Made by a program: the position numbers and the translations under genes. Shown here piece after piece: positions 61,982 to 63,993 of a DNA stretch of 64,000 nt. The notes under the pieces are model-generated. The model did no database searches. It worked only from the letters and a program-made list of their open reading frames with translations, and was not told the origin of the DNA. The stretch is from Phallusia mammillata (taxonomy: Eukaryota): NCBI GenBank assembly GCA_965637545.1, contig OZ281494.1, positions 32,488,001 through 32,552,000 of the forward strand. The letters are read 5' to 3'. Numbering within the stretch: the stretch's first letter is position 1; each line of letters begins with the position of its first letter.

Positions 61982-63993
61982 CTAGTTTGGAGGTAATGGG
62001 TTCATTTGCATTGGTTGACCGAACTGCTGAAGATTTTGTCGTGGAGATGGGCTGAAATTCCGTGCTTTGAAATAAGATGTAACTTGTGAGGGGACTTCAG
62101 CTAAAACATTTTTAGCCAGTTCAGCTGGTGCAGCCTGCATTAAAAAACATTGTGGTTTAGTTGTTGTAAATAAGGTTTACTAGAAGCTACTTTATTTTGC
62201 GGTAAGCAATTGCAATTGAGTCACTGTTTTTGAGTAGAACTGGGTTGAGAACAGTTCACTTGGTGAAAAATAACATAACAACACACTACTACATTTAAAC
62301 AATCACCAAGCCGGAAATAGCTGGACAAGCACAAGATTGTTAGTAAATTTTGCTATGTGATGAAAAATGAACGATCAAGTAATGCATGACCAATGAATGT
62401 AGATTGGGTAATTGTGGTTGTCAAAAAAATGCATTCATGAAATTATTAAATGCAAAAATGTGAAAAAATATAATGAAAAATTGCCTGATATACATGTGTT
62501 CAGGAGATACATATGCATACATTCATCCGATGTTTATGTGTGTTGTATTTGTGTTTTATTATAGTAATTCTACAGTTGTTTGGAGCAATTACCCACTTTT
62601 TACGATTTTTTTGAATGCTTGTTTTACACGTTACAAGTGTAAACGAGTTAGAAATGCAAGAAAATCCAAAAGTTATATGCAATGCCACAAAATAAAGCAA
62701 AAAAATAAAAATAAAATTGGCCTAACGTGTTTAGATAAATGTCATTGCAAAGCAAAGAGATGGATGAAAATCAAGCATTCGTTGGTGAGTTTTCGATTGC
62801 AAAAAATAAAACTCATAGCAAACACAATACCACAATCGCTGCTTACCAAATGAAATTCAAGAGTTAGCATAAGCAGGGGGCGATGTATTAGAACCAAATG
62901 GATTTTGCTGAGCCAATTTGGGGTCTTTCAAAGGTTGAATTTTGCGTGAACGATAATATGAAATGACCTGATCGGGCAATTCAGCAAGAACATTTTTTGC
63001 AAGAATATGTCGTGGTGCCTAAAAACATTATATTTTTATTTTGTTGTGTATTTATTATAAGGATGATTGTACAATTTAGGTGTCAAATGGCAAGCCAACT
63101 TTTTTAAAGGTTGATTATTTTGACACATATGGAAATGTTTTATTATATACCCCACCTAAAAAACTTCTAATCGATCCCTTGTTACTTAACCTACAATGCC
63201 AAATATTTTTTAATATATTTCAGCGGGATATTTAAATCAAATGTTGGATAAAAAAGTGCAAAAAATGCATATTAATGTAAATGCTTTGTGGTGAATCCAT
63301 ATTTTGATGTTTTGTGAAAAAAATGTTTTTGGCTTTTGTTTATAGATTTGTAACAAAAGCGTTTTCCAACAAAATGATTTTCTGAAAGAATGATACAAAA
63401 CGACACCAACACAGACAGCAAAGCAATATTTTACATTTCCAACACAAGCATTAAACAACGAAAAAGAACAAGTCAATTGCTTACATTTCTGAAATCCCTG
63501 AAAGGAACAAATTGTACAATGTCCCTCATACAAGGTCGACCACTTCGATCTGTCAGTCGAACATCATCACCGTCCAAGACATTCATTTCCGTAAAATCAG
63601 CCCCACCTAATAAAATACATTATTTACAACAAAACATTTCAGGAAGACTAGACACTGATTTAAAAAGTTGTATTGTAGTAAGAAATGAGTCAGTTGTTCC
63701 ATACATGAAATTTTTTTTTTTAAATGAAAAACTTTTCAACGATTTAACAATGTTTAATTCATAGAAAAAAGATCCCCACTTTAACTACTGCTAGGAAATA
63801 CAACATCAAAATCAGAAGAGTGAAACATAAACCAAACTATACTTCACATTTAATATGATCCAGTATTTTGTTACCCACCTACTCCTACAATAATAATCGA
63901 CATCGGCAAATGTGAAGCCGCAACTATCGCATCTTTAGTTTGATGGAAATCTGATATGACACCGTCCGTTAAGATCAGAAGAATGTAATAATT
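61982..63993 (-). CDS. CPNE: Copine family protein, vWA C-terminal part; exons 63993-63879, 63606-63485, then distal terminal exon 62134-61982
   Basis: [39 protein letters not shown] / [14 protein letters not shown]...[15 protein letters not shown] / [25 protein letters not shown]...LPPN*. Copine hallmark motifs [29 protein letters not shown] and LAEVP are present with in-phase GT-AG junctions. 5' exons lie beyond the window; the paralogue cannot be assigned. Confidence 0.95.
62857..63018 (-). CDS. CPNE: Copine alternative (proximal) terminal exon
   Basis: ttttag|GCA... reads [53 protein letters not shown] in phase 0. It is paralogous to 62134-61982, and AATAAA signals follow it on the minus strand (62560-62555, 62196-62191). 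Confidence 0.9.
   Translation of the reverse strand, partial: APRHILAKNVLAELPDQVISYYRSRKIQPLKDPKLAQQNPFGSNTSPPAYANS

Follow-up and report, generated by a model that had tools for sequence, protein, structure and literature searches.

A duplicated last coding exon gives copine-3 of the ascidian Phallusia mammillata two C termini chosen by splicing

Two candidate last coding exons lie in tandem at the 3′ end of a copine gene of Phallusia mammillata, and only one of them encodes a PPxY motif. This raises the questions of how a single gene selects one of two C termini and of what the selection might be for. An earlier reading of the DNA without any database search (hereafter the sequence-only reading) had answered that exon duplication gave one gene two C termini, that alternative polyadenylation could choose between them, and that the choice would switch engagement of WW-domain ligases on or off. 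We analyzed the locus in a 64,000-nucleotide stretch of the Phallusia genome, hereafter the window, together with transcript contigs and related copines. The explanation that best accounts for all the findings, in which we have high confidence, is that the last coding exon was duplicated, that the proximal copy (exon A) is a cassette carrying its own stop codon, and that splicing determines whether the protein ends with exon A or with the distal copy (exon B).

Two terminal exons in a copine-3 gene

The features of the copine 3′ end, all on the minus strand, are listed in Table 1. Exon N-1 ends with ...FRDFRN|gtaagc, and exons A and B, each following an AG acceptor, are both in phase 0 with its donor at 63485. 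Their open reading frames (ORFs) are intact, that of A (63018-62857, minus strand) encoding 53 residues that end with ...SPPAYANS* and that of B (62134-61982, minus strand) 50 residues that end with ...PLPPN*, which confirms the two intact C-terminal exons seen by the sequence-only reading. That reading was also right that both exons keep the last vWA helix, each aligning with the final ~28 positions of PF07002, the Pfam Copine family (E 0.005 for A and 0.00055 for B), and that the exon pair has a PPxY motif, PPAY, in exon A only. Together, the four exons in the window match positions 108-217 of PF07002 in order. The joint between exons N-2 and N-1 shows an 8-nt ambiguity in the contigs, with GT..AG fixing the donor after 63879.

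Table 1. Features of the copine-3 3′ end, in window positions
Feature	Position	Strand	Basis
Copine-3 exon N-2, vWA domain	63879..63993	-	Pfam Copine E 2e-17; RNA joint 63879 > 63606; exact in A0A6F9DAH3
Copine-3 exon N-1, phase-0 donor after 63485	63485..63606	-	Pfam Copine E 1e-9; joints to 63018 and 62134
Intron N-1 > A, 466 nt, GT..AG	63019..63484	-	RNA joint in runs X1, X3, X11
Exon A, 172-nt cassette, A-type C terminus (53 residues)	62847..63018	-	Flanked by joints 63485>63018 and 62847>62134
PPAY (PPxY/PY motif) codons, exon A	62869..62880	-	Sequence; residues 551-554 of AF2 model
TGA stop, A isoform	62857..62859	-	10 nt upstream of exon A donor (GTAAGC)
Intron A > B, 712 nt, GTAAGC...CAG, AATAAA at 62560 and 62196	62135..62846	-	Joint in X1, X3, X11
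Exon B coding part, 50 residues + TAG	61982..62134	-	ORF; joint 63485>62134 in 4/4 runs
3′UTR common to both forms, ~1.1 kb, far end approximate	60848..61981	-	Contig cover beyond exon B

Exons A and B are 45% identical in protein and ~60% identical in DNA over the helix-coding part, and the duplication that produced them is therefore old. The window holds no copine pieces other than the exons listed, which rules out that the second exon belongs to a separate, degraded copine copy.

The protein encoded by exons N-2, N-1, and A is found letter for letter in UniProt A0A6F9DAH3 (CAB3233424.1), a 557-residue entry named "Copine-3 [Phallusia mammillata]." The deposited Phallusia copine-3 protein is thus the A isoform, and the B isoform is absent among the database proteins retrieved for Phallusia. 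Since the full-length deposited protein (P0156) carries PF00168 and PF07002, the gene is, as judged from its domains, a member of the copine family, which combines two C2 domains with a vWA, or "Copine," domain. Its placement in the copine-3 group follows the name given to A0A6F9DAH3 in UniProt and NCBI and the best named matches, which are ascidian and vertebrate copine-3 proteins. In the AF2 model, which represents the A isoform with a mean pLDDT of 87.8, the exon-A helices at residues 507-515 and 518-528 are folded with confidence, and residues 542-557, including PPAY, have a pLDDT < 50.

The two C termini are chosen by splicing

Transcript evidence came from contigs of four Phallusia runs, belonging to three studies, that were placed on positions 59500-64000; we presume that the runs are RNA, since their contigs cover only exons and carry GT..AG joints. 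Both junctions expected from the sequence-only reading were found. The joint 63485>62134, in which exon A is skipped, occurs in all four runs and shows that the B isoform is made in Phallusia, and the joint 63485>63018, in which exon A is included, occurs in three of the four (X1, X3, and X11). A further joint, 62847>62134, connects exon A to exon B and was seen in three runs, which belong to three studies. All three joints of exon A have GT..AG ends. Because both flanking joints and the skipping joint are present, exon A is a cassette exon, and exon B becomes 3′UTR in the transcripts that include it. Mutually exclusive use of the two exons is ruled out by the joint 62847>62134, which places A and B in one transcript. 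As measured by contig depth (A included/skipped, ~39/68, 37/46, 6/12, and 0/36 in the four runs), which is a rough measure, as contigs themselves can drop rare forms, inclusion of exon A would amount to about a third to under half (≤ ~44%) in three runs and to none in the fourth.

The proposal that these are alternative last exons chosen by polyadenylation did not survive these data. It would have A and B each using a poly(A) site of its own, with the proximal AATAAA selecting the PPxY isoform, and two AATAAA motifs are indeed present downstream of exon A (62560 and 62196). However, two motifs against 0.74 expected from composition is no enrichment, which makes them unremarkable. Moreover, exon A is spliced onward to exon B, and contig cover over 62218-62821 is zero in all four runs. 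Even allowing that contigs may miss rare 3′ ends, such as those from a little-used poly(A) site downstream of exon A, we consider this reading very improbable. Since both mRNAs have one 3′UTR and poly(A) region, the isoform is chosen by splicing, and a choice by polyadenylation is without support. Contigs continue beyond exon B to 61406 (X1) or 61566 (X8), and further contigs reach 60848, with gaps in the 3′UTR cover only at low-complexity runs.

These findings correct the gene-model logic at the locus, from polyadenylation to splicing of a stop-carrying cassette, and they fit the following scheme. The last coding exon was duplicated in tandem long ago, and the proximal of the two copies, A, kept a 5′ splice site. 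When exon A is skipped, exon N-1 joins exon B, and the protein ends with the B helix and the tail ...PLPPN. When exon A is included, translation ends at the TGA in A, and the protein finishes with the A helix and the tail ...SPPAYANS. The swap would replace the last two vWA helices and the tail, which is predicted to be disordered.

In mammals, nonsense-mediated decay (NMD) that depends on the exon junction complex (EJC) is triggered by a stop codon situated over 50-55 nt ahead of the last junction. The stop in exon A is 10 nt from the last junction, and the mRNA of the A isoform would therefore be expected to escape EJC-dependent NMD. This bears on whether exon A might be a poison exon, the inclusion of which would mainly lower the amount of B protein without giving a functional A protein. 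Exon A does introduce a stop ahead of the last exon, and its inclusion varies among samples from 0 to ~44%. However, its stop falls outside the 50-55 nt rule, the mRNA product in the databases for Phallusia is the A isoform, and, as described below, the A ORF is under purifying selection, with residues specific to its type conserved in both ascidians and teleosts. In light of this, a poison exon is barely credible.

Downstream of the copine 3′UTR, further transcribed contigs were seen at 59500-59747 and 60844-60861. The contigs that reach 60861 run into unrelated letters, with loose ends in all four runs. These ends may point to an adjacent gene, or to splicing onto an exon that lies beyond the examined stretch. 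A tblastx search of the window gave no sign of CENP-L, the gene found downstream in Ciona and Clavelina.

The same exon pair is found in other ascidians

Among the ascidian matches, 90%-identity clusters contained RefSeq pairs of copine-3 isoforms from Ciona intestinalis (XP_002128214/XP_002128234, X1/X2), Clavelina lepadiformis (XP_076807931/XP_076807932), and Styela clava (XP_039264884/XP_039264886), which, like the Phallusia forms, differ in exactly the A/B exon. The exon occupies the same position as in Phallusia, after ...FVPFR.F.N, and the tails are of the same A type (ELPDQ) and B type (EVP.Q). In Clavelina, the A-type X1 ends with ...APPPYSSAPPNPAY and the B-type X2 with ...GNAPPS. In Styela, the A-type form ends with ...GPPPAYAT and the B-type form with ...QAPPPPM. 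In Ciona, the A-type X1 ends with ...KPPPQQWPTPNS, which is without PPxY, and X2 is of the B type. Unlike the Phallusia pair, which is documented by RNA joints, these isoforms are automatic predictions, and we found no discussion of them in the literature.

Exon A precedes exon B in the genomes of Ciona (L020) and Clavelina (L021) and in two metagenome-derived contigs (L002 and L005), and each of the five species in which both exons are present has a GT donor at a distance of 0-17 nt from the A ORF end. Ciona X1 terminates in ...QQW followed by PTPNS, a sequence that reads from a 116-nt exon A into a shifted frame of exon B. Since this end arises only by A>B splicing, the cassette design is annotated in Ciona too. 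Both observations, a donor after the A ORF in every species examined and an annotated A>B splice in Ciona, speak further against separate poly(A) sites. The Ciona exon nevertheless differs from that of Phallusia in having no internal stop, so that its frame runs six codons into B, and in having no PPxY.

Both exon types are conserved. When the first 33 residues are compared across species, A exons are 82%, 67%, and 58% identical to one another and B exons 73% and 48%, as against 42-58% between A and B within a species. Same-type identity between species thus exceeds A-B identity within species with one weak exception, the 48% between the B exons of Phallusia and L002, which is not above A-B identity in Phallusia (48%) or L005 (58%). 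For Phallusia compared with L005, we obtained a pN of 0.16 for exon A and 0.17 for exon B with pS saturated, and we report pN and pS in place of dN/dS because of this saturation of synonymous sites. Each type also has conserved residues of its own, A carrying ELPDQ..R.R and B carrying EVP.Q..YFK. The same-type identity and the low pN together show that both exons are under purifying selection and functional, and that the duplication predates these splits, which makes the exon pair, by this comparison, at least as old as the ascidians. The proposal that exon duplication gave one gene two C termini is thereby upheld, both exons being used in RNA and both being maintained by selection.

A contig of different content was also seen. 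In L001, a 1.38-Mb ascidian-like contig from an ENA metagenome assembly, a copine has only an A-type terminal exon with PPPY (10091-10252), which is preceded by a 3.9-kb intron, and the next gene is LSM11. A B exon is missing from the sequence within 10 kb, and the neighbors are not shared. This copine would be either a paralogue or that of a lineage that lost exon B.

Teleost copine-3 genes carry a similar pair

The X1/X2 isoforms of teleost copine-3 (for example, those of Salmo salar, Poeciliopsis, and Takifugu) also differ in this exon, one being of an ELP type and the other of an EVP type. Their last coding exons form a tandem pair in which the ELP exon is the proximal and the EVP exon the distal member, the same order as A and B in Phallusia, and the ELP exon of Chanos has a 15-residue string in common with the L005 A exon. 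Unlike the Phallusia A tail, the teleost ELP tails have no PPxY. In a tree built from 34 columns, all ELP/A rows formed one group, in which the ascidian A clade had a support of 97/89 and was joined to the ELP exons of fish at 97/91; no common group of ascidian B with fish EVP was resolved in that tree. A 37-column tree of mixed copine tails resolved no grouping. Judging from exon order, signatures, and the grouping of the A-type exons, it is likely that the copine-3 exon pair arose before the tunicate-vertebrate split. Across ascidians, copine-3 has retained two C-terminal modules that can be exchanged for each other, and it has probably had them since before vertebrates diverged.

In Caranx melampygus (GCA_019059645.1, L022:5395-6492), too, the ELP last exon comes before the EVP last exon in a tandem pair. 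The gene model deposited for this species (P0162) connects the two in frame, which is probably an annotation error.

What the A tail may be for

The PPAY of exon A fits the consensus of class I WW ligands, [LP]PxY. When the seven A-type tails were aligned, only PP[PA]Y was conserved beyond ...P.(K/R)DPK. The motif is present in five of the seven (Phallusia, Clavelina, Styela, L001, and L002), absent from Ciona, and degenerate in L005 (APPY). L005 carries PPQY on its B tail instead, which shows that PPxY is not strictly tied to exon A. Functional short linear motifs typically show up as a lone conserved island in a drifting, disordered tail, and the PY motif fits this pattern given the disorder predicted for this part of the protein. 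We considered whether, in most ascidians, the PPxY of the A tail might dock class I WW-domain proteins, NEDD4-family E3 ligases among them, with the A isoform alone being recruited or ubiquitinated. This is a plausible but tentative proposal, which we would doubt slightly sooner than accept.

A precedent exists in ERBB4, where, as in Phallusia copine-3, inclusion of a cassette exon adds PPxY to one of two isoforms (CYT-1, but not CYT-2). The PPxY on this exon recruits the WW-domain E3 ligase Itch, and only the PPxY-bearing isoform is strongly ubiquitinated (PMC4303208). The two cases differ in design, the ERBB4 exon being an in-frame internal insert of 16 residues in a receptor and the Phallusia exon a duplicated terminal exon with its own stop. 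They also differ in evidence, since WW binding was shown by experiment for ERBB4, whereas the PPxY of Phallusia copine-3 is known from sequence. For copines themselves, NEDD4L ubiquitinates human CPNE1, with the motif unmapped (PMC8572224), and the conserved PY island suggests a route for this reported link.

The same alignments are open to another interpretation, in which both isoforms are functional but PPxY is incidental. What would count is the exchange of the vWA helices and of the basic R.R..P..DPK segment, for example by altering the binding of partners to the A domain or the packing of C2 and vWA domains, and not engagement of WW ligases. The ELPDQ..R.R and EVP.Q..YFK signatures occur far more widely than PY, in both ascidians and teleosts; the A/ELP tails of Ciona and teleosts are without PPxY, L005 has it on exon B, and the exon-A helices are confidently folded in the AF2 model. 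Against this interpretation, PP[PA]Y is the sole conserved island in the distal tail of five of seven A exons, and PPxY recurs in vertebrate copine-8 tails. On balance, an incidental PPxY is about as easy to credit as to question, with a slight lean toward the latter. Because the type-specific signatures are conserved more widely than PY, the comparison suggests that the PY motif is no more important than the helix and the basic segment.

The vertebrate copine-8-type tails (…PAPPPYTPP…; for example, Callorhinchus "Copine 8" and Polyodon CPNE8) resemble the Phallusia A tail in having PPxY just after the last vWA helix. They belong, however, to a different copine clade (…SMARLAKDVLAEIP…), and their PPxY is constitutive: in the data examined, its presence varies between different copine proteins and not, as in Phallusia, between isoforms.

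A more far-reaching scenario combines these elements. The exon pair would predate the tunicate-vertebrate split and act as a regulated switch, in which only the A isoform couples Ca2+-triggered membrane binding to NEDD4-family ligases, as substrate or adaptor, by means of the PY motif found in most ascidians; this link would have been rewired or lost in vertebrates and Ciona. As a whole, this scenario is unlikely.

What the choice between two C termini would mean for copine biology can nonetheless be approached, as the conserved PY island provides a cheap, testable handle on the function of the copine tail. The sequence-only reading knew of no such arrangement in copines, and this held in the literature covered, where we found no description of copine C-terminal isoforms or copine PY motifs; a review describes human copine isoforms mainly as deletions and alternative N termini and does not mention a C-terminal exon pair (PMC10968396). 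It did not hold for databases, as RefSeq lists such isoforms for Ciona, Styela, Clavelina, and many teleosts. The pair is a tandem-duplicated alternative exon that was already annotated automatically in sister species, and its novelty is modest. The analysis adds the Phallusia B isoform, which is now documented. It should be of use to copine researchers and for ascidian gene models, and holds no surprise in kind.

Other motifs and terminal exons

Two further short motifs were seen in the tails. The Phallusia A tail holds NPF, the classical EH-domain binding motif, at 62894-62902 (minus strand). Since Clavelina has NQF and L005 has SQF in its place, it is probably there by chance. The B-type tails of Phallusia, Clavelina, Styela, and L005 end with PPN, PPS, PPM, and PPS, respectively (window positions 61985-61993 in Phallusia), and this terminal PP plus one residue may be a second short motif.

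Coral-associated metagenome contigs (L012:5226-7241, and also L010 and L007) encode a copine of another clade, of the …SYM/SFM type, with three intact tandem terminal exons, each starting with FVPFRD. The third of these exons carries PPQY in L012 and PPQH in L010. The presence of three tandem last exons in another copine clade implies that the last exon has been duplicated more than once in animals.
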